A DNA stretch of 61,970 bases, filler included, from Choristocarpus tenellus KU-1152 (taxonomy: Eukaryota; Protista; Phaeophyceae): assembly GCA_964200185.2 (NCBI GenBank). It is 8 parts of 8 records of this genome, joined end to end, with 100 filler letters (N's around TTAATTAATTAA, not from the genome) between each part and the next. Parts side by side here need not be neighbours in the genome. Positions count along the whole stretch, not along the records: positions 1 to 10,556 come from CAXNAD020002857.1; 7 more parts are not named here. One strand, given 5' to 3'. Positions 1-10,556 of the stretch are shown here, one piece after another. Every line of letters begins with the position of its first letter. Within the stretch, counting starts at the first letter, position 1. The notes under the pieces were generated by a model that saw only the letters and a program-made list of their open reading frames with translations, had not been told where the DNA came from and ran no database searches. Position numbers and translations under genes: made by a program.

Positions 1-1004
1 CTATCACATAATCCACCAGTGGTGTCTATAGTGTATCAGCAGCACTATCTACGAACATAAGATACTTTGGCTCCTGGTCTCGGTAGGCAAAGGGAGAAAC
101 GGGGTGGTTGCCCGAAGGGAAGATTGGGGAAGAGAGCAGTGTGACTGCGTACCATTGCGCTCAGAAAACGCCTGAGCAAAAACCCGGGTGTAGAATATCT
201 TAGTAGTCGACAGTTGGAGCAGGCCGTGGCTGTTTGGAAGCTGTGCAAGGTGGAGTGGCTTAAGGAAACAACAAAGGTGTTAGGGTTGGGCTACAAGGAC
301 TCTGAAGCCCGAAAGAAGGTTGAAGAGGCTCGCAAGGCGGAGGAGAAAGCGATTTTAACAAAGGCAGCTGTGGAGGCTTTTCGATACAACCAAATCCTTT
401 ACTTAGAAGAGGTCGCGAAGCAGGTGGAGGTAGCCATTGATGTGGACGCCAGGGAAGAAGAGGAGATGAGATCGAGACTATGTGCACACTGATGGTTTGG
501 TGTCTCCCACTTTTTGCCAGATGCCGTACTTTCCCTTTTGTTCCTAGACTTAGGGTTGGACGTATAAAGTTGATTTTAAGGTTTTCTACAAGCCTGCATT
601 CATTTGAGAAATCAACACAATTTTCGATCAACTCAAGCCCGTCCTCCCTCGCCCTTGCACTTTGATGATAAAATACCACCCACCCAGGAAACACAAACGA
701 CACCCATTTCTGGCGCTCAACTAGGAAATGTGATAGTAAGGGCTCTAACATGACGAATCCTGTACGTGTGTATAAACGACGGGAAAGACCGTAAAACAGT
801 GCTTGAGATGGCAGCAGGATATGCAATGATCAGGTTGGAAACTGTGAGTAAATGGGAGAGAGCTGAGTTGTTTGGGTTGGTTTACATCACTCATGGTCTT
901 AGACAGTTCACACACAAGACTCCTTCAATTGTCCAAGACAATTATGTCGACTGGTTTGCCACAACCTGTGCCTTCTTTGGCGTTAAAGATGATATCAATG
1001 AACA

Positions 1005-4000
1005 TTGGAGGGCAGGGTGGAGCCTCTTAGAGTGGGAGAGATTAACCTCATCAAGGGGGAGGATGTAAGTGAAGAAGGAGTCACCAAGGCCAAGAAAGCA
1101 TATGTCGTCCTGTTGAGGAGCACCAGTGGTTTCTACACATGCATTGTTTGCAATGCAGCATCTCCTGCCGAGGCATGGAAACAGCTAAGGGAACATTTTC
1201 TCGTCCATTGAGATGAGGAAATGTTTGATTGCAGAAAATGGTGTTGAATTTCAAAATGCCAAGGGGGCCTGACCCCCAAATCACTTTCGCCATGATGTTG
1301 GACTGGGTGGGTCGGATGGCTATGATGGGACATGTGATGTCGGAGCAATTTCTTCAAGTTGCAATGCTGGACTGTTTGGACCGTGACTACCAGATCACCA
1401 AGCACTACTTGCAACATTACAGTAATGGTGAGCGTTCGAGGGCTATGATACAAAATGCTGCTTGTTCGCACTACTTCTCCCTACAACAGGCAGCTAACCA
1501 CAGGGAGCTTGGGAGCACTCGAGCCACAAGAGCTGTGACCTCGTAGAAGAGATTACTGAACGTCTACCGTGGAGGTGGCCACAGTACAGTTAGTCACCAT
1601 ATAGACCCTGAAACGAGAGGATCTCGTGCCAGGGGCAAGACCAAGGCATGCGAAAAATGTTTCAAGTGTGGGTTGGTCAGACATGCCGATCCTTGCACGT
1701 TTGAAGGACTGTGGTACAGCTGTGGGAGTAGAGGGCACCTGCAGTACTTTTGTTTCAGGATAGGGTAACCCCGTCGAAACAGGCAAAAGAACCAGCTGGA
1801 CTCCTCCCCATCACCAGTCCCTTTGCTGGTTACTTCTTCAGCTTTACAAGCAGAGCGTGAGCATAGGAGGTTGAATGTTAAGTTGGGGACAAGGGCGACA
1901 GATTCTAGAGTTATCCTATCAGATGGGGAGGGTCTTCCACGTGTTGCTGAGTGGGACGAATCAATGTATACAACTGAAGTTGAAAGGCTGGAACCCCCCG
2001 ATGACTCACCCCCTGTCGCAAATGTCTCGGCTGCACTCACGCGCATTAAAGTTTTTTCTTGCATTTTGAACCATGCTGGTGAGCCCATCCTCCGTTGTAC
2101 AGCAAGTGAACAGAGAATCAAGCTGTCAGGAGATCTGACGTCAATGGAATGTGTGGGGTGTGATAAGGGAATTCGAATAAGAGATCCCACCTCCAAGTCT
2201 AGTATGGTTCATGGTAAAGTACCGTTCACCTGTATTTTCATTGACCTCACTGGACCTAAGAAAGTGCGATCTCTTGGAGGAGTGTGGTATGCCCTGGTGA
2301 TTGTTGACAATGCAACACGTTTCATCTGGATATACGTGCTCAAGCAAAAGAAAGATGCAGCGAAGGCCCTTGGGTAATGGCACATGATTGAGGTCATCCC
2401 CAGTGGGCGACACGTATGTTACATCCAACCTAATCCTGGAGGTGAATGGCAAAGTGAGGAATTCAGACTTTAGTAGTGGAGATGGGCGCAGTGTAGGCAA
2501 CAACAAGAACAGGAGAACCCCAGCACAATGGCGTGGTCAAATGTCATATTGCTCAGGTTGACGGTGGCGCAAGGGCCACCATTTACTCAGTGGGGTTGGG
2601 TGAGAAAATGTGGTTGTGGGAAGAGGCATTCGCTCTCAACAGAAGCACCACTGCTGCAAATACGGGAATCTCACCTTGTCGTGCACTGTATGGAGAAGTG
2701 CGGTATTTAATGGCCGTATCAGCTTTTGGCACTCCTGGATACTACAAGTCCAACCCAATGCAGAAGCTTAGAAGTCATGGGTGACAGTGTATCATGCTTG
2801 GGATGTCAATGGATCAACCCGTGGTACACTTCGCGTCCTAGACCTCACAACAAATCACGTAGTCCAGCGAGCAGGCATTCATTGGCACCCCACAAGGGAT
2901 GGCAGGGTACGTTTTCCGACCTCAAATTTGAGCATGAAAGCGATGACGTAGATGATACTCCAGGATACATCCTTCCCCTGCATGCGTGCTGGAGGACTAC
3001 AAAAATTCAGGAGATGGGGAGTGATGATAGAATCTTCTGGATTGAAGGAGGATTAGGTGACGAAAATGAATCTGTAGATGCATGGGGCGAAGGTACTGAA
3101 ATAGGAGGAAATGAATTGGCCCCTGTGGATGATGGTAATAATGATGACAACGATGTCAACTGGATCGGATGGGACAATATCAATTGTTAAGGGAAAAGTG
3201 ATAAAAAAACCCAACAAAAGTCGAAGTGACAGAGAGCTTCGACATCTTAGTTCTGGAAATGGTCAGGACAACACCCTTCCTCACTGTACCAGATCTAGTA
3301 ACTGTCAAGATACTTCTGGAAAAGATGCTGTTTTTGTGATGCCTTCAATTTTTTTTATGTGTTTGTTTCCATTGAGACTATATCCTTGTGGTGTGCAAGT
3401 GGATGAGCTCCTTCCAGAACCCAAGGCTGTAACAGCAGGAAATAGATCTCCCGAATGTAATCCATGGGATCGAGCTAGAGCAGAAGAGATGTCTGGTCTG
3501 TTGTTGAACAATGTTTGGTTGGAGGCCATATTACCCGCTGGGCACATGGCAATAGACACTAAGTGGGTTCACAAGCGTGCGACCAACAAATTTGGTGAGG
3601 TAGTCGGATACAAGGCACGTTTGGTAGCAAAAGGTTTTCGACAGATTGGGGATTTAGATTACCAAGATACCTTGCTCCAACACCGTTGCCCGCATCTTTG
3701 AGAATGTTTTTGGACTAGCTGCAGACAAGGATAAGGAATCGAAGCATTGGGATGTTAAGTAGACTTTTATACAAGCAAATATTAGTCAAGAAATTTATGT
3801 TCGTTTAAGTAATGGATGTGATTTGTGGTCAGGAAAGATTGTTCGTTAAGTGGAAGCTCTTTATGGCATCAAACAGGCTAGCAGGGAGAGTTTAATAATT
3901 TGTTGGTGCACGTTTTTGGAACAATGTGGCTTTGAGCAATGCACAGAGCAGGTTCCTGTGTGCTACTCTAGACAGTGATTTCACACTTTTGTGGATGAAT
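1005..4000 (+). mobile_element. Decayed Ty1/copia LTR retrotransposon internal region (gag, zinc knuckle, integrase, truncated RT)
   Basis: Gag-like AASPAEAWKQLREHF; CFKCG knuckle ~1657; pre-integrase H..C..C; rve motif IFIDLTGPKKVRSLGGVWYALVIVDNATRFIWIYVLKQK; RVT_2 motif AIDTKWVHKR..YKARLVAKGFRQ. INT-before-RT order indicates copia. Many stops and frameshifts; no recognisable protease or RNase H. Confidence 0.9.
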
Positions 4001-6725
4001 ACTTATTTCCTCTTTTCTAGAGCTAAAGCCTCCAAAGGAGGGTTGTTGCATTCAAGGTATGGAAAAAGGGGTATCAGGCAGATGATTTCAAAATCTGTAA
4101 GGAGTCCGGAGATGTTCTCAATGGGTGAATGTGGTTTATTGAGTGTTTGCTGGATGTTTGATATTACAGAGCAAGCAGTGCAAGCCTAGTGCTAGAAAGT
4201 GGACGTTAGACAGAGTAGACAGACTCAGGTGTTGCATAGACAATGAGTGACAAAGAGCAAGTGGCTGCCAATACCATCCTGGTAAGAAACATTAGAGAGC
4301 TAATCACTTCTAGAAATATCCTGAATAGCAGACATTGTGGGCAGTGTGTGACCAAAATTTGTGGGGTATGAGTACTATGCAAAAAAAGTGCTTGTGTTGA
4401 GTTTAACGTTGTCCTGAGTGTGCAAGATACACAAGACAGACGCATATTGCTTCTATTGTATGTGACATTTTATTGCAATGCTTTGTTGCATAAAGCAGAA
4501 TCTGTACGTGGTATAATATCGTAAGTAGCATACCTACAATTAATGCTCCCTATTGAATGAAATTATCGGGCTTGTGTCTCTCTCTTTTTTAACAGATACA
4601 AACACTGCAAAGAAGCCACATACCCTAACATGCTATGTTGATGTGGGAGGACAGTTATCATTATTGGTGGTTTTATCGTACGCAAGGTGTAGATTGGACT
4701 TGCCAAATCCGTGACCAGAGGCTTCCTAGTTGTTCAATCCATGAATATGTTCTGTAAGTTGTCACAGCAATTGGGTACTATGTTACACAATGACGAAAAA
4801 AGTAGGAGAAAAGGGAAAAATAGAGGAGGAAAGAGTGCACAAACTGGTACAATACGGCAGAGCACAGGGACAGGAACCATTCTCTGGTGCGCGCAGAGCG
4901 ATCGCATACTAATGCGGAAGCATCAATTCAAATCTGTTTGCCAGGAGACCGATAATTTGAAACAAACTATTCTAAAACCATAAATCCAACAACCTGTCCA
5001 GCAGTCCAATGTTTGGATCCAATTTAGTATACACCGTCCCTCCATACAAGAGTCAAACCAATCGAGAGGATGGCAGGGTTGCATTTTGAGGATCCCGAGA
5101 AAGGGCAAAAATATGTCATTTTCAAAAGTTGCAGAATGAGCCTTTCCTGAATTGTGGTGTCACTTTGTGTGTGTAAAGGAGGAAAATCAATTTTTGTATA
5201 TTATTGTGCACATAGAACAATGAAATAGTTTATTGTACAGGGTAAGAAATATGACTTAGAATACAAAGGGGTCCAAACCTGCCTACCGCTCAACTGGTTT
5301 GGTTCACAACAATAGACAAAGGGAGTGTCCTCATCCCAAAATGCTCATGATCATCAAAGTGCATCTGCTTCACCCACCACTTGGGCATTCAGCAATCAAT
5401 ATCCAGTTCCAATGACCTGCTTGCCACATGGTAGCGCATATGATATTATATTCCATTCATCCCTGTACTAGTAGTACCATAAATAAAGACTAGTATTATT
5501 TTGAACTATATAAACCTGCACTATGATGTTTGCTGTGGGGAAAGCCTCAAATTAGTCACTAGGTTGTTGCCATCACCCAAGGCCACATCCACATATCAAA
5601 AGAAAATGTATATTTTCTGACAACTGCATGTATATCCAACAAGTAGGGATCAGAGGCAATAATGAAGAGGAACGACAATAACAACGTAAAATGGCTCTGC
5701 AGTATACAACACCCCAAAAATAATTCACAGCAAGGTGCACATACACACACACAAATAGTTAGATATCCATTATACTACATGATCTAGGTACAGCAGGTGT
5801 AAGAATTCCCTATTCCATTGAGGCAGTGTTCTTCTGTTGCTGTCTCTCAACTAGGGAGCAAATGAAGGCCCTAAGAACTAATAGTGTCACTCAGTGGTGT
5901 GTTGCTGCCATTCTAAGGTTATGGCGTTGGGGAGGTTTTAACTTTGGTTCAGGTGGGGGCATGGCACATACTTTCATGACTGATATCATCTTGATGCCAC
6001 CAATGACCAATGTTTTTCTTGGTTGAGGGTGAAATGACAATATAAAAGGGAATGAGGGAAGAACAAGCTCCCATGAAGTAGGGGTATTGCAGCTCCTGGG
6101 GGAAATAGGCTCAGCAAAATCAAACGTGAACCAAAAGATAGGGCATTCATCTGGTACGATCTTGTTCAAAACATCTTCAGTATAGTGTCCTAGACAAGCT
6201 TGAGAGCGAAATAAATCTATTTCGGCCAATACAAAAACAACTATGCAAGATTCTTGAGAGAGCAAAAGTCTAAGTCCTATCTTCCTCCACACTAGGTTCA
6301 AAATAAATGAGGGAAAATTTCCTCTCCTGCACAACCATCCTAGTGGGCCATGTTTACAACTCTCCCTCCTGAGCATGGAGGCTCTAAATATACTCTTATC
6401 CCAGTACCAATTTCAGTCCTTCCTGTATACAACTTCACTACAAAATGTTAAACACCACTCACAAACGTATAAAGTAGCACAGCCTCCTCACCTCTCAGTC
6501 TGGACACAGTGTGCGCCCATAATGCCACGTTTCACTTCACCAAAACAATGTTCTGCATTCCCATCCATTCCAGATTCAGAAGTAGATCAGCGAACACATA
6601 CCAACCAGTCCCAATAGGAATTACTCAAATCCTGACATGTTATCCAGAATTGCCCACAGCAGTACCTTGACTCTCAAACCATATACAACCGAAGCTAAAC
6701 TAGAGGGAAATCATGTGTGCTGCCC

Positions 6726-8189
6726 TCAAGACTTCCTCAAACATACCATGCCATCTACCTTGTGGCTTGAGCAGAACTTTGCCCTACTGTCCTTATTACC
6801 AAAGGTGGGCTGTCGACCACATCCTGGTTGCTGGCAGCGGTCATGCTTAACATCCACCATACCATTCAGCTTATGTCCAGAGCAGTATCTTGCCTTCCGG
6901 TCCTCCTCGTAACCAAAGGCAGGCTGGCGAACACATCCTGGTTGGTGACAGCGGGCATTCTTGACATCCACCATTCCATCCAGCTTATGTCCAGAGCAAT
7001 ATCTCGCCTTCCTGTCCTCCTCATGACCAAACGTGGGCTGGCGGCCACATGCTGGTTGCTGGCAGCGATAACTAACTACGTCTATCATGATGTCAAGCTT
7101 ATGTCCAGAGCAGAATTGTGCCTTCCCTCCCTCATAGCCAAAGCTAGGCCAACGGGCACATTCAGGATGCTCGCACATGGATTTCCTGACATTTACCATA
7201 CCATCTAGCTTATGTCTTGAACAATACCTCGCCTTCCTGCTATCTACATAACCGAAAACGGGCTGGCGGGCACATCCTGACTCCTGGCAATACACACTCC
7301 TCAAATTCCTCATACCACTCAGCTTATGCAAAGAGCAGTACCTCAGCTTCCTGTCATCCTCATGACCAAAACTAGGCGAACGAACACACCCATGATGCTC
7401 GCATCGAGATTTCTTCACATTTTCCATACCATCCAGCTTATGTCTAAAACAGTACTGTGCCTTCCCATCCCTATAGCCGAAGTTGGGCCACTTGACACAT
7501 CCAGCAGGGTGTCGGCACCTGGCATTTTTCACATCCACCATGCCATCGAGCTTATGCCCTGAGCAGTACCTCACTTTCTTGTCCTTCTCAAGACCGAAGA
7601 CAGCGTAGCGGGCACATCCATGGTGCTGGCAGCGGGTATTCTTAACATCCACCATTCCGTCCAGCTTGTGTCCTGCGCAGTACCTAGCCTTCTTGTCCTC
7701 GTCAAAACCAAAGGCGGGTTGGCGGACACATCCTGTTTGCTGGCAGCGGGCATGCATAACATCCATCATACCATCCAACTTATGCCCAGAGCAGTACAAC
7801 GCCTTCTTCGACTTCTTCTGGTCCCCTCCATGACCGAAGCTAGGCCAGAGAATACATCCAGGGTGCTGGCACTGAACCTGCTTCTTCACTGCAGAAGGGG
7901 TAGCGACTGAAGATATCTCCTCGCGCAGTTGTGAGGAATGTGATGCTTGATCTGCTGTTCCCAGACCTCTCCGCTTTGCGTTTGGACCTGCTGCCGTTTC
8001 ATGATCCCTCTTGCCATACCCACCACCAGTTTTGGAGTTCACCATTCGCGGTTTCATTGTAGGGGGATGTCCTCCCAATACGCAAGATTGATCCTCGTCA
8101 GATATTAAAATGGGGTAGACCTCTTCTTGCTCGTTTGACAAGTCGGTTCCCAAGGCCGGGTTTGTATTTACAACAGGTGGTTGGTTCAT
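6726..8189 (-). CDS. EsV-1-7 cysteine-rich repeat protein (10 tandem ~38-aa C-x4-C...C-x2-H repeats, N-terminal bipartite NLS)
   Basis: Uninterrupted 487-aa ORF. Repeats CxxxGCxRxPxFG...ARYCSGHKLDGMVDVK match the EsV-1-7 family as I recall it. KR-x10-KRR at aa 60-74. Start codon uncertain because a GTAAGT lies at 8206-8201. Confidence 0.9.
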   Translation of the reverse strand: MNQPPVVNTNPALGTDLSNEQEEVYPILISDEDQSCVLGGHPPTMKPRMVNSKTGGGYGKRDHETAAGPNAKRRGLGTADQASHSSQLREEISSVATPSAVKKQVQCQHPGCILWPSFGHGGDQKKSKKALYCSGHKLDGMMDVMHARCQQTGCVRQPAFGFDEDKKARYCAGHKLDGMVDVKNTRCQHHGCARYAVFGLEKDKKVRYCSGHKLDGMVDVKNARCRHPAGCVKWPNFGYRDGKAQYCFRHKLDGMENVKKSRCEHHGCVRSPSFGHEDDRKLRYCSLHKLSGMRNLRSVYCQESGCARQPVFGYVDSRKARYCSRHKLDGMVNVRKSMCEHPECARWPSFGYEGGKAQFCSGHKLDIMIDVVSYRCQQPACGRQPTFGHEEDRKARYCSGHKLDGMVDVKNARCHQPGCVRQPAFGYEEDRKARYCSGHKLNGMVDVKHDRCQQPGCGRQPTFGNKDSRAKFCSSHKVDGMVCLRKS

Positions 8190-8639
8190 TGTGTCCCCCG
8201 ACTTACTCTTGTGACTTCACACTCAGGACCATTTAATGACAATTGTAGCTATTGAGGTTTGAGGAACTACGAGAAATGTTAAGTTTGATAAAAAAAAAGT
8301 CCAGTTTGATAAGAAGTCCCTTCTATTATTGTTGATACCTCAAGTTTATCATCCTGCAAATATCGTATCGATATCTGTTCGAGTAAATTATCGTTTTGCT
8401 CCCAATCGAAGAACTACGCATCAAAGTTATATTTAACTGACAAATGTGGTCATCACCTCACATCTGTTGAGGTCTGAACTAACCAGCATGGTTACTAGAA
8501 AATCCTCACAGCAGAAGAGGATGTTCCACCCAAAGATACAGCTGATGTACCTGCTGCTGGCAGTACTCCTTAGTTCGAAGTTGGCTGATCCTCACCCTCT
8601 TAGGCTGATCCCCTCAATCATCGACCCACACCCATGGCC

Positions 8640-9780
8640 CTTGCTTCTGCACAAACGATGATGGAAGTGACTGAAACACTCCGGGCAACATGAAATGGGA
8701 AGACTATGGGTCCCCACAATCTTCCAGTTGAGCTCCTAAAGCTTGAGCTAACAGGAAGAGCTTTCAACAACGCTGGTGTTGACTCTATGGAACCAGGAAG
8801 CTGTGCCACAGGTCTGGGAAGATGCTGTCATCACCATGCTCTACAAGAAGGACCACACCAATGGTGGGATCTACAGGGGCATTTCGTTCTTGGCACATGC
8901 TGGCAAAGTCGTTCTCAAAGTTGTTGCACAGTGGGTGGGGGATTATGTGGGATGGGAGAGCATGATGCATGAGGAATAGTGTGGCTTCAGGCCCCGACAC
9001 TCCACAGTGGACATGATGTACATTGTACATGCCCTCCAGGAGCTTGGCCGGGAAGGGTTTGTACCCCTATTCATGTGCTTTATCAATCTACAGAAAGCAT
9101 TGTACTTGGTTAATTTTGTCTCCAGTGTGCTGTCCTGGGCAAAATTCGCACACCCCCTGAATATAATTTCTATCATCCGCCATTTCACAATGGTTTGAGG
9201 GCATGTGCTGGCATGGATGATGAAGAGATCGCAGGCTCAAATTATCTGGGGGGCGGGGTGACGACTGTCCATTTGGGGCTAATTTTTCCATTGCGATTTT
9301 AGGGTGATTTGGTTGCATGCGTCGGATGGATAGTCCAAGTGCACTTCTCCTGGTCAGGGCCTTGAATGGGCACCCTAGTGTAGAGCCCCCCCCCCCCCAG
9401 ATACTTTGGTTCATAGACTGGATCGAGGTTGTGCAGGGTCCGTAGCAGGAGTGTGTTCTTTCCCCAATCCTCCTTGACATCTTCTCTACTGCAATGCTAA
9501 ATGCGGCAGTTAAGGAGTTCACCTCTGGCATGTCCATCTCCAATGACCTTGTCATCATCAAGAGAAGAGTCACAAACAACCAAGTCAGAGGAGGAGGAGC
9601 ATCATGGAATGGAAAACACTTGAACGGCTTTTATGGGATATATGTTTTTTTCTGATGATGCAGGCATTGTCTCTAAGACCCCAGGAGACTTGGTCAGGAT
9701 GATGACAGTGCTTGTGAAGGAAGTCAGATAATTTGGTCGAGCTTTATCGGCACAATAAAGATGGAGGCTATATGTCTTCG
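8640..9780 (+). mobile_element. Decayed non-LTR (LINE, RTE-like) reverse transcriptase fragment, interrupted by a MITE
   Basis: VPQVWEDAVITMLYKK..YRGISFLAHAGKVVLKV; CGFRP..STVDMMY; FMCFINLQKA; QG..QECVLSPILL; F-SDD (YADD-like) near 9650. Frameshifted. Confidence 0.85.
9234..9412 (+). mobile_element. MITE family A (~180 bp) inserted in the LINE RT
   Basis: TIRs GGCTCAAATTATCTGGGGG ... CCCCCAGATACTTTGGTTC; homologous to 49697-49874 and 55891-56074. Confidence 0.85.
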
Positions 9781-9819
9781 CCCTCCTAAGAACAGCCGAT
9801 TTCAAAAATTGAGGATGGA

Positions 9820-10036
9820 GCTTTTCATTGAGGATTGGCTTGACCCAAAATTGACTGGGATAAAGTGTTGATATGTTTTTTTTTTATTACAATTTATGTA
9901 CTAAAAATCAGGGGTGTCTGGAACAAGCATGTTGACATTTCCTAACAAACATGATAGCCAATTTTTCCTCAAAATTGAAACATTGGATTATGGCCCCCAA
10001 TTGGACATGACTCTACCCTCTAAGATACTTTGTCTC
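9820..10036 (-). mobile_element. MITE family B, degenerate copy
   Basis: Ends in CTCTACCCTCTAAGATACTTTGTCTC; internal similarity to 38571-38830. Left boundary approximate. Confidence 0.7.
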
Positions 10037-10556
10037 AAATGGTCTGAGTGATACAGACCTGTGTGAAGAATAATAATCACTGGTCCGAAGGTGACAGCGA
10101 GGTGAATGGGTGCGGCCTCTGCATTCTTCTATGGTCCTCTGTCCGTTTCGATGAGAGCGCCTGTCCCAGGATCTTGACCTGGAGTGAGATCTGCCACTAG
10201 TGGAAGACCGAAAACGAACATGCTCTCTGTGCCTGCCTCAACGTTCAGCAGCGTGGACATGGTTGTAACCAGAATTCCCTTGAGTTGTGGTACTGGGCTG
10301 GAATCTCTCGGAATCATTGATTCCTTGCAGAATCTGTGGGCTGGAGGCGACCTCAACTTCTCGCGAATACTGTGAGCCAGACATGTCTGCGAACCTGGGA
10401 GATAAAGGGCAACGTGACAACCAAAAGAGAACAGGGATGTGTGAGTAGATGAATGCAGAACAATTAACTACCTAGGCAACGTCTCGACCATGGCGGTCAA
10501 AGACTGTTAAGAATATGCTTTTTATTCATGTGTAAAAGAAGATTCTGTAGAAGAAA

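Follow-up and report, generated by a model that had tools for sequence, protein, structure and literature searches.

We describe a gene in a 61,970-nucleotide stretch of DNA (the window) joined from eight records of the genome assembly of Choristocarpus tenellus KU-1152, a member of the Phaeophyceae. A minus-strand open reading frame (ORF) at positions 6726-8189 encodes a protein of 487 amino acids, most of which consists of ten tandem copies of the EsV-1-7 repeat, and the gene is almost certainly an intact, ordinary member of the EsV-1-7 (PF19114) family. The function that we favour for the array, at a probability that we put a little short of even, is that of a nuclear recognition array for a polyanion, most probably DNA or chromatin-associated nucleic acid. 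This reading draws on six lines of evidence taken together: the basic charge of the arrays, a variable strand nearly free of acidic residues, positions that are specific to individual repeats and conserved between ortholog-like proteins, the fusion of EsV-1-7 to a transposase in Ectocarpus, the phenotype of the EsV-1-7 regulator IMM (IMMEDIATE UPRIGHT), and a motif resembling a nuclear localisation signal (NLS) ahead of the array.

A complete ten-repeat gene in a large family

The ORF begins with an ATG, contains no internal stops and lies in a single exon. Its 1461 open nucleotides terminate directly after repeat 10, such that the array fills the protein to its last residue, and upstream of the ATG the open frame adds just nine codons (a 496-amino-acid frame). 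In a Pfam scan of the 487-residue protein, PF19114 (EsV_1_7_cys) was the only family to reach its cut-off, with a score of 443.8 bits (cut-off 25; E=2.1e-136) and ten stretches, each of which spans profile positions 1-33/35 or more; neither a second family nor a catalytic domain was found. This agrees with the first-pass annotation, made from the sequence by eye, which had proposed an EsV-1-7 Cys3His array of ten head-to-tail repeats of 36-42 amino acids over residues 107-487, lacking a catalytic domain. At the DNA level, Tandem Repeats Finder reported a period of 114 nt (8.9 copies, 66% matches, positions 6790-7806), and a second repeat search also returned a 114-nt spacing. Compared to repeat 2, the repeats of the gene show 47-76% identity.

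The four putative metal ligands are retained in all ten repeats, in the pattern Cys-x4-Cys-x16-18-Cys-x2-His, with exceptions of spacing in repeat 4 (C-x5-C) and repeat 1 (a longer loop). The first-pass annotation had gone further and described a near-invariant scaffold, C-x4-C-x-R-[X]-P-[Z]-F-G...C-x2-H-K-L-D-G-M, in which two variable residues, X and Z, flank a proline. We refer to X as repeat column 9, Z as column 11 and the arginine before X as column 8. The ligand pattern of that scaffold holds in every repeat; its arginine is replaced by leucine in repeat 1 and by lysine in repeat 4, where the first ligand spacing also departs. All ten X/Z pairs had been read exactly, including the change of the intervening proline to alanine in repeat 3 (Table 1). 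The basic character ascribed to the array is likewise evident, with an isoelectric point (pI) of 9.33 and 70 lysines and arginines against 39 aspartates and glutamates. Two plus-strand ORFs that cross the array (6828-7208, 126 amino acids; 7620-7910, 96 amino acids) are not genes, being periodic antisense shadows of the repeats.

Table 1. Features of the EsV-1-7 gene, with positions in the window
Feature	Position	Strand	Amino acids	X/Z	Remarks
Complete single-exon coding sequence	6726..8189	-	487 + stop		From the ORF list; stop codon 6726-6728
Non-repeat N-terminal region	7872..8189	-	1-106		pI 6.3; no Pfam domain
Bipartite NLS-like motif, KR-x10-KRRGL	7962..8012	-	60-76		Pattern match and shuffles
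Repeat 1	7746..7871	-	107-148	W/S	Leu for Arg; long loop
Repeat 2	7632..7745	-	149-186	Q/A	
Repeat 3	7518..7631	-	187-224	Y/V	Pro10 to Ala
Repeat 4	7404..7517	-	225-262	W/N	C-x5-C; Lys for Arg
Repeat 5	7290..7403	-	263-300	S/S	
Repeat 6	7176..7289	-	301-338	Q/V	
Repeat 7	7065..7175	-	339-375	W/S	
Repeat 8	6951..7064	-	376-413	Q/T	
Repeat 9	6837..6950	-	414-451	Q/A	
Repeat 10	6729..6836	-	452-487	Q/T	

Ahead of the array, the pattern KR-x10-KRR at residues 60-74 (8012-7968), which had been put forward as a bipartite NLS, is present as described. No second pattern of this kind occurs in the protein, and when the N-terminal 106 residues are shuffled, 0.8% of the shuffled sequences contain one. 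A search of the protein database with the N-terminal 110 residues found no relative. Within the genome, the N-terminal 106 residues have one weak paralogue, belonging to an array on contig C9865 (34% identity, E=2.6e-6). In that paralogue (724-2493, minus strand), the N-terminal region is doubled in tandem and is followed by seven repeats.

The EsV-1-7 family is large in this genome. We counted at least 404 candidate repeats on dozens of contigs, and all 150 of those that were scored exceed the PF19114 cut-off. Among the paralogous arrays examined, repeat number ranges from 2 to 21 and no second domain accompanies the repeats; in ten such arrays there was no credible second domain, as hits to DKNYY, CMV_1a_C and LisH covered 0-1 stretches and either overlapped the repeats or fell below their cut-offs. 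The longest array seen, on contig C2490 (245-3040, plus strand), has 21 repeats in a 932-amino-acid open frame with a 135-amino-acid non-repeat N-terminus. The gene described here is single-copy, its closest paralogues being at most 72% identical in DNA.

The exact 487-residue protein has no match on record. A word search of the protein database returned 842 homologues, mostly metagenomic, the best of them just 36-49% identical, with named sources that include "viral metagenome", an "uncultured virus" contig of 1.6 Mb and Monoraphidium. Clusters matched by predicted shape in the Atlas were EsV-1-7 clusters only, mostly from Nucleocytoviricota and one from Chlorophyta. One homologue, at 47% identity, is encoded on the 240-kb JGI metagenome contig Ga0439241_0000035, where genes are dense on both strands and its neighbours include a kinase, an SF1 helicase and an AAA protein; by its gene packing, this contig looks like a giant-virus genome.

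Published surveys place the family in context. According to the Phaeoexplorer preprint, neither animals nor land plants have EsV-1-7; its expansion dates from the ancestor shared by brown algae and raphidophytes, and a species may have up to 335 genes, often in tandem clusters. A 2026 preprint identifies EsV-1-7 as the largest brown-algal orthogroup, with viral affinity and no other Pfam domain in Ectocarpus. The best-characterized member is IMM, which governs early sporophyte patterning in Ectocarpus and for which five repeats are reported (Phaeoexplorer preprint); it is described as "a protein of unknown function", and the EsV-1-7 domain as one that "may be a novel zinc finger", in line with the view of the first-pass annotation that the molecular function of these repeats is unresolved. 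The Phaeoexplorer preprint recognizes IMM orthologs by an IMM-specific N-terminal domain. That the N-terminal region of our protein has no database relatives argues against IMM orthology, on a database comparison that included no direct alignment to IMM.

The gene lies on contig C2857 (window positions 1-10,556) of an assembly of 164 Mb in 27,310 contigs. The host is brown-alga-like by its plastid-type rbcL (488 amino acids), for which identity reaches 91% with Phaeophyceae, 90% with Chrysoparadoxa and 89% with Vaucheria; this places it among the ochrophytes, in the group of brown algae and xanthophytes, as a brown alga or a near sister lineage. The occurrence of EsV-1-7 repeats here fits the brown-algal distribution that the first-pass annotation had given for them. 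In the same region of contig C1 (101332-105249), rbcL is followed by a 139-amino-acid ORF at the place where red-lineage plastids carry rbcS. The contig of the gene also holds a degenerate Ty1/copia remnant at about 200-4700 (plus strand), with fragments of an integrase core (about 2222-2362) and of RVT_2 (about 3507-3671) in frames disrupted by stops and shifts; no pair of long terminal repeats was detected for it in the window. At 10039-10504 is a dispersed element of about 466 bp, present in at least 40 copies elsewhere in the genome at 82-91% identity and matching no tRNA or Rfam family; it may be a SINE, a MITE or a solo long terminal repeat. RNA genes were not found in the searched region. 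We considered and rejected an anti-transposon role read from the copia neighbour, as nothing ties that remnant to the gene.

Predicted structure: a zinc module in a regular rod

To describe the fold, we modelled repeats 2-5 with AlphaFold2 from an alignment of 140 four-repeat segments of homologues. The resulting model has a mean predicted local distance difference test score (pLDDT) of 93.6 and a predicted template modelling score of 0.60; a single-repeat model reached a pLDDT of 85.8, with strands at residues 12-14, 19-22 and 31-33. In the secondary structure assigned to each repeat by DSSP, the C-x4-C knuckle has no regular structure and is followed by a hairpin that pairs Phe12-Gly13 with Tyr22, a one-turn helix at residues 24-26 that holds His26 directly after Cys23, and a third strand at 31-33 (Met31-Val32). 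When Atlas models of other arrays, predicted independently, are overlaid on the four-repeat model, the template modelling score is 0.80 (root-mean-square deviation 2.6 A over 151 residues), which suggests that the array is a regular rod rather than beads on a string.

Across 942 homologue repeats, taken from the best 120 of the 842 homologues, Cys1, Cys6 and Cys23 are conserved at 99-100% and His26 at 95%, and cysteine is the main substitute for the histidine (3%). The invariant Cys3His set, the exchange of His for Cys and the confident, compact model together make it probable, to a good degree of confidence, that each repeat binds one zinc ion through Cys1, Cys6, Cys23 and His26. The first two ligands are placed on a knuckle and the last two where a helical turn begins beyond a hairpin, and on this modelled arrangement the module appears to be a minimal zinc finger of treble-clef-like form.

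Two further features of the module stand out. Met31, in the H-K-L-D-G-M segment (for example at 7653-7655 in repeat 2), is conserved in 95% of genome repeats and 99% of the 942 homologue repeats, exceeding the histidine ligand; it may serve in packing of the core, in contact between repeats or in some other role. The strongest within-repeat covariation in the genome links column 2, just after Cys1, with column 21, just before Tyr22-Cys23 (mutual information z=11.2); the two columns might touch across the zinc site, or the signal might mark a subfamily.

The fold has no close counterpart among solved structures. Sequence searches of the PDB with the single protein and with a 145-repeat profile gave chance hits only (E>=0.9), Foldseek, run against the PDB with each of the two models, four-repeat and single-repeat, returned nothing at E<=0.001, and an Atlas feature search excluding PF19114 yielded no usable hit. 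In VIA-align, the best score was Z 2.5, to the RING domain of MEX-3C (2.3 A over 35 residues), with the IDOL RING, a TRIM B-box and the nsp13 zinc-binding domain also among the hits. All of these weak PDB hits (Z 2.0-2.5) are zinc modules of the treble-clef kind (RING, B-box, LIM, ADD and the nsp13 zinc-binding domain); scores of this size are far below significance, and homology of the modelled repeat to RING, B-box or LIM does not follow from them.

Variation at X, Z and other columns

We examined variation in the repeats at two depths, within this genome and across the wider family. For the genome, 50 loci provided 253 distinct repeats, 162 of them intact. Among the intact repeats, X has the highest entropy of all columns (3.69 bits), followed by columns 7 (3.52), 14 (3.37), 25 (3.33), 4 (3.24) and 3 (3.17), with Z and column 21 at 3.04 each. 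Z therefore ranks seventh, with six other columns at least as variable, and at least ten columns vary in all. Column 8, which the first-pass annotation had called a fixed arginine beside X, is arginine in only 51% of genome repeats and is often lysine (30%) or threonine (24%) in homologues.

Rates of change tell a similar story. Using Nei-Gojobori counts on 50 independent nearest repeat pairs (63-96% DNA identity), we obtained an overall ratio of nonsynonymous to synonymous differences (pN/pS) of 0.42, from proportions left uncorrected, in repeats that are short and partly saturated (pS 0.42); by this count, EsV-1-7 repeats are under purifying selection. Expressed relative to the overall synonymous rate, the nonsynonymous rate at X is 1.02 (bootstrap confidence interval (CI) 0.79-1.29), about neutral and the top column in 89% of bootstraps, while that at Z is 0.55 (CI 0.37-0.78), comparable to other variable columns. 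No covariation links X with Z (mutual information z=0.8), and the pair occurs in 79 combinations among the 162 repeats. Identity between repeats within genome arrays is lowest at columns 25, 14, 9, 7 and 4, with column 11 in the middle of the range; within this gene alone, column 11 has the lowest. The first-pass annotation had suggested weighing X and Z by genome-wide entropy and by nonsynonymous against synonymous change. On both measures, taken from the repeats of this genome, X leads all columns and Z is ordinary.

In the 942 homologue repeats, the entropies of columns 7, 25, 9, 24, 14 and 11 rank close together. A more telling comparison comes from 30 independent pairs of ortholog-like proteins among the same 120 homologues, which align collinearly across 80% or more of their length, are 56-84% identical and provided 225 matched repeat pairs; ortholog-like status here is inferred from collinearity alone, and the proteins are mostly viral or metagenomic and not orthologs of this gene. 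Between repeats of one protein, identity is lowest at columns 9 and 11 (0.16 and 0.14), and in 92% of bootstraps these two hold the lowest places. When matched repeats of two proteins are compared, the same columns each reach 0.52, as against 0.38-0.47 for the other hypervariable columns (3, 4, 7, 14 and 25), whose mean they exceed in 97.7% of bootstraps. Columns 17, 19, 20, 24, 35 and 36 show relative conservation similar to that of X and Z.

Charge adds to this pattern. Aspartate and glutamate make up 0-1% of residues at columns 8, 9, 11 and 35 in the 162 genome and 942 homologue repeats, though these columns vary, while the equally variable knuckle columns 2-4 contain 10-40%. The 120 best homologues are basic throughout, with a median pI of 8.66 and none below 7.6. 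Positions that are specific to each repeat, kept between orthologs and free of acidic residues are what would be expected of contact residues facing a negatively charged partner, and to judge from these alignments, X in this genome, and X and Z together across the family, look like recognition positions. Of all our results, this family-wide pattern gives the strongest support to the choice of X and Z as recognition positions; the two-residue specifics of the idea find no support in this genome, where X and Z do not covary and at least ten columns vary.

Possible functions and known counterparts

In the mechanism that we favour, ten modules stacked head to tail would form a regular basic rod, preceded by an N-terminus that looks disordered and bears the NLS-like motif. 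The array would be nuclear and would recognise a polyanionic partner through a multi-residue variable surface made up of the knuckle, the first strand and the helix start (columns 2-4, 7, 9, 11, 14, 21, 24 and 25). X and Z would be two determinants among several, not a self-sufficient two-residue code. We infer zinc binding, treble-clef class, nuclear location and the nature of the ligand alike from the sequence comparisons and models above. Transposases of the Tc1/mariner kind carry DNA-binding domains at their N-terminus. In the Ectocarpus Tc1/mariner element TcMar-2_Ec32, EsV-1-7 has been recruited to the N-terminus of the transposase. In the present genome we found no fusion of this type, with none of 22 DDE_3 transposase remnants having an EsV-1-7 repeat within about 1.5 kb.

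Several observations weigh against nuclear polyanion recognition. The literature that we searched gives no zinc, metal, localisation, ligand or structure data for any family member. The models have no significant structural match to any nucleic-acid-binding fold, and the best hits are usually protein-binding modules. The NLS-like motif is only partly kept in the C9865 paralogue, where the first basic cluster is lost from both N-terminal copies and the KRR half survives in one of the two. Side chains at X and Z are rich in Gln, Arg, Ser, Thr and Asn, several of them of the base-contacting kinds that the first-pass annotation had listed, and are almost never acidic, but about a third are hydrophobic (24-36% at X, 33% at Z). 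X also shows covariation with two columns of the repeat before it, 33 and 36 (z about 9, on a generally inflated background), about as strong as that with its neighbours in its own repeat. DSSP assigns a beta-bridge at column 9 only in the second modelled repeat, and another at linker residue 38 just before it. In the model, X may thus be located at the repeat junction, and the pattern seen at X might then arise, without any ligand, from packing between repeats against columns 29 and 33, which are conserved and acidic.

The closest competitor, which we consider possible though rather unlikely, is a protein-interaction scaffold: a zinc-stabilised repeat platform whose variable surface picks protein partners, for example acidic ones. 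The hydrophobic share at X and Z fits such a surface, as does the spread of variability across about ten columns. Large repeat families of Nucleocytoviricota, in which EsV-1-7 is abundant, are generally taken as protein binders, and ankyrin and FNIP repeats are expanded in giant viruses. Similarly, the 2026 preprint pairs EsV-1-7 with FNIP as the largest virus-derived orthogroups. The only structural neighbours, all of them weak, are RING, B-box and LIM modules, although a Z of 2.5 to such modules is no evidence of homology. The uniformly basic pI, the exclusion of acidic residues from the variable strand and the recruitment of EsV-1-7 to a transposase N-terminus all speak against a scaffold of this kind.

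A bolder version of nucleic-acid recognition would make EsV-1-7 arrays sequence-specific nucleic-acid binders of a new modular class, unrelated in structure to known ones and common to giant viruses and brown-alga-like hosts, in which exposed first-strand columns 7, 9 and 11 (perhaps also 14, 24 and 25) would specify successive bases, one 38-amino-acid module after another; the specificity of an array could then be read off its sequence and perhaps reprogrammed. We regard this as improbable. Slightly more doubtful still is the strict model of the first-pass annotation, in which one module reads one base through the X/Z pair beside a fixed arginine, as in TALE, PUF and PPR proteins. Regular array geometry with a period of 38 amino acids, the rapid evolution of X in the genome, and the way in which X and Z distinguish the repeats of homologues, persist between orthologous repeats and avoid acidic residues would all suit such a code. 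However, Z is unexceptional in the genome, the many X/Z combinations show no covariation, the arginine is not fixed, many other columns are equally variable, the fold bears no relation to the code families, and the scaffold, judged by identity to repeat 2, is far less uniform than that of TALE proteins. About equally unlikely is that the gene is a relic, either a piece of an endogenous giant virus inserted in the genome or a duplicate that is decaying and not expressed: its single exon, its metagenomic and giant-virus best hits and the transposon debris around it would fit, but the long open frame, the complete ligands, the purifying selection on the family, the dozens of paralogous arrays on many contigs, the absence of any viral hallmark gene on the contig and flanks composed of host repeats (the copia remnant and the 466-bp element) argue otherwise. 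No evidence bears on the antiviral or anti-transposon role that had also been suggested.

What is new here is one ten-repeat member; the family is already in Pfam and has been counted across brown-algal genomes. Its interest lies in the standing of EsV-1-7 as the largest brown-algal orthogroup, one that includes IMM and is common to giant viruses. Columns 9 and 11, being repeat-specific, ortholog-conserved and almost never acidic, are concrete targets for mutagenesis, and a confidently predicted module with no solved relative, in arrays that are uniformly basic, offers a testable prediction to anyone expressing one. Should nucleic acid prove to be read module by module, the arrays would represent a new programmable binding scaffold; should the ligand be a protein, this would explain a major repeat family common to virus and host.

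Compared to known systems, the gene is closest to the EsV-1-7 family itself (PF19114/IPR043822; IMM, gene 7 of the phaeovirus EsV-1), with which it shares the repeat hidden Markov model, the ligand pattern, the tandem layout and the lack of any second domain, in a host that is brown-alga-like and in which the family is greatly expanded. It differs from IMM in having ten repeats rather than five and an N-terminal region without database relatives. Treble-clef fingers (RING, B-box, LIM and GATA-type) are alike in predicted knuckle, hairpin, helical turn and ligand placement, and the EsV-1-7 spacing resembles that of the GATA type (C-x2-C-x17-C-x2-C); in contrast to those families, EsV-1-7 would hold one zinc per module with no cross-brace, and head-to-tail arrays of 10-21 modules are not known from them. 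With TALE, PUF, PPR and C2H2 proteins, EsV-1-7 has in common tandem modules of 30-40 amino acids, a regular predicted geometry, basic charge and a few repeat-distinguishing, ortholog-conserved positions, whereas its fold is unrelated, about ten of its columns vary, it has no restricted vocabulary of residue pairs, and its nucleic-acid binding is hypothetical. Lineage-specific zinc-finger expansions such as the KRAB-ZNF genes offer a parallel in evolutionary behaviour: EsV-1-7 is likewise a large, fast-diversifying family, with a tendency to tandem clusters reported in the Phaeoexplorer preprint and a near-neutral putative contact position, though its proteins carry no effector domain such as KRAB.

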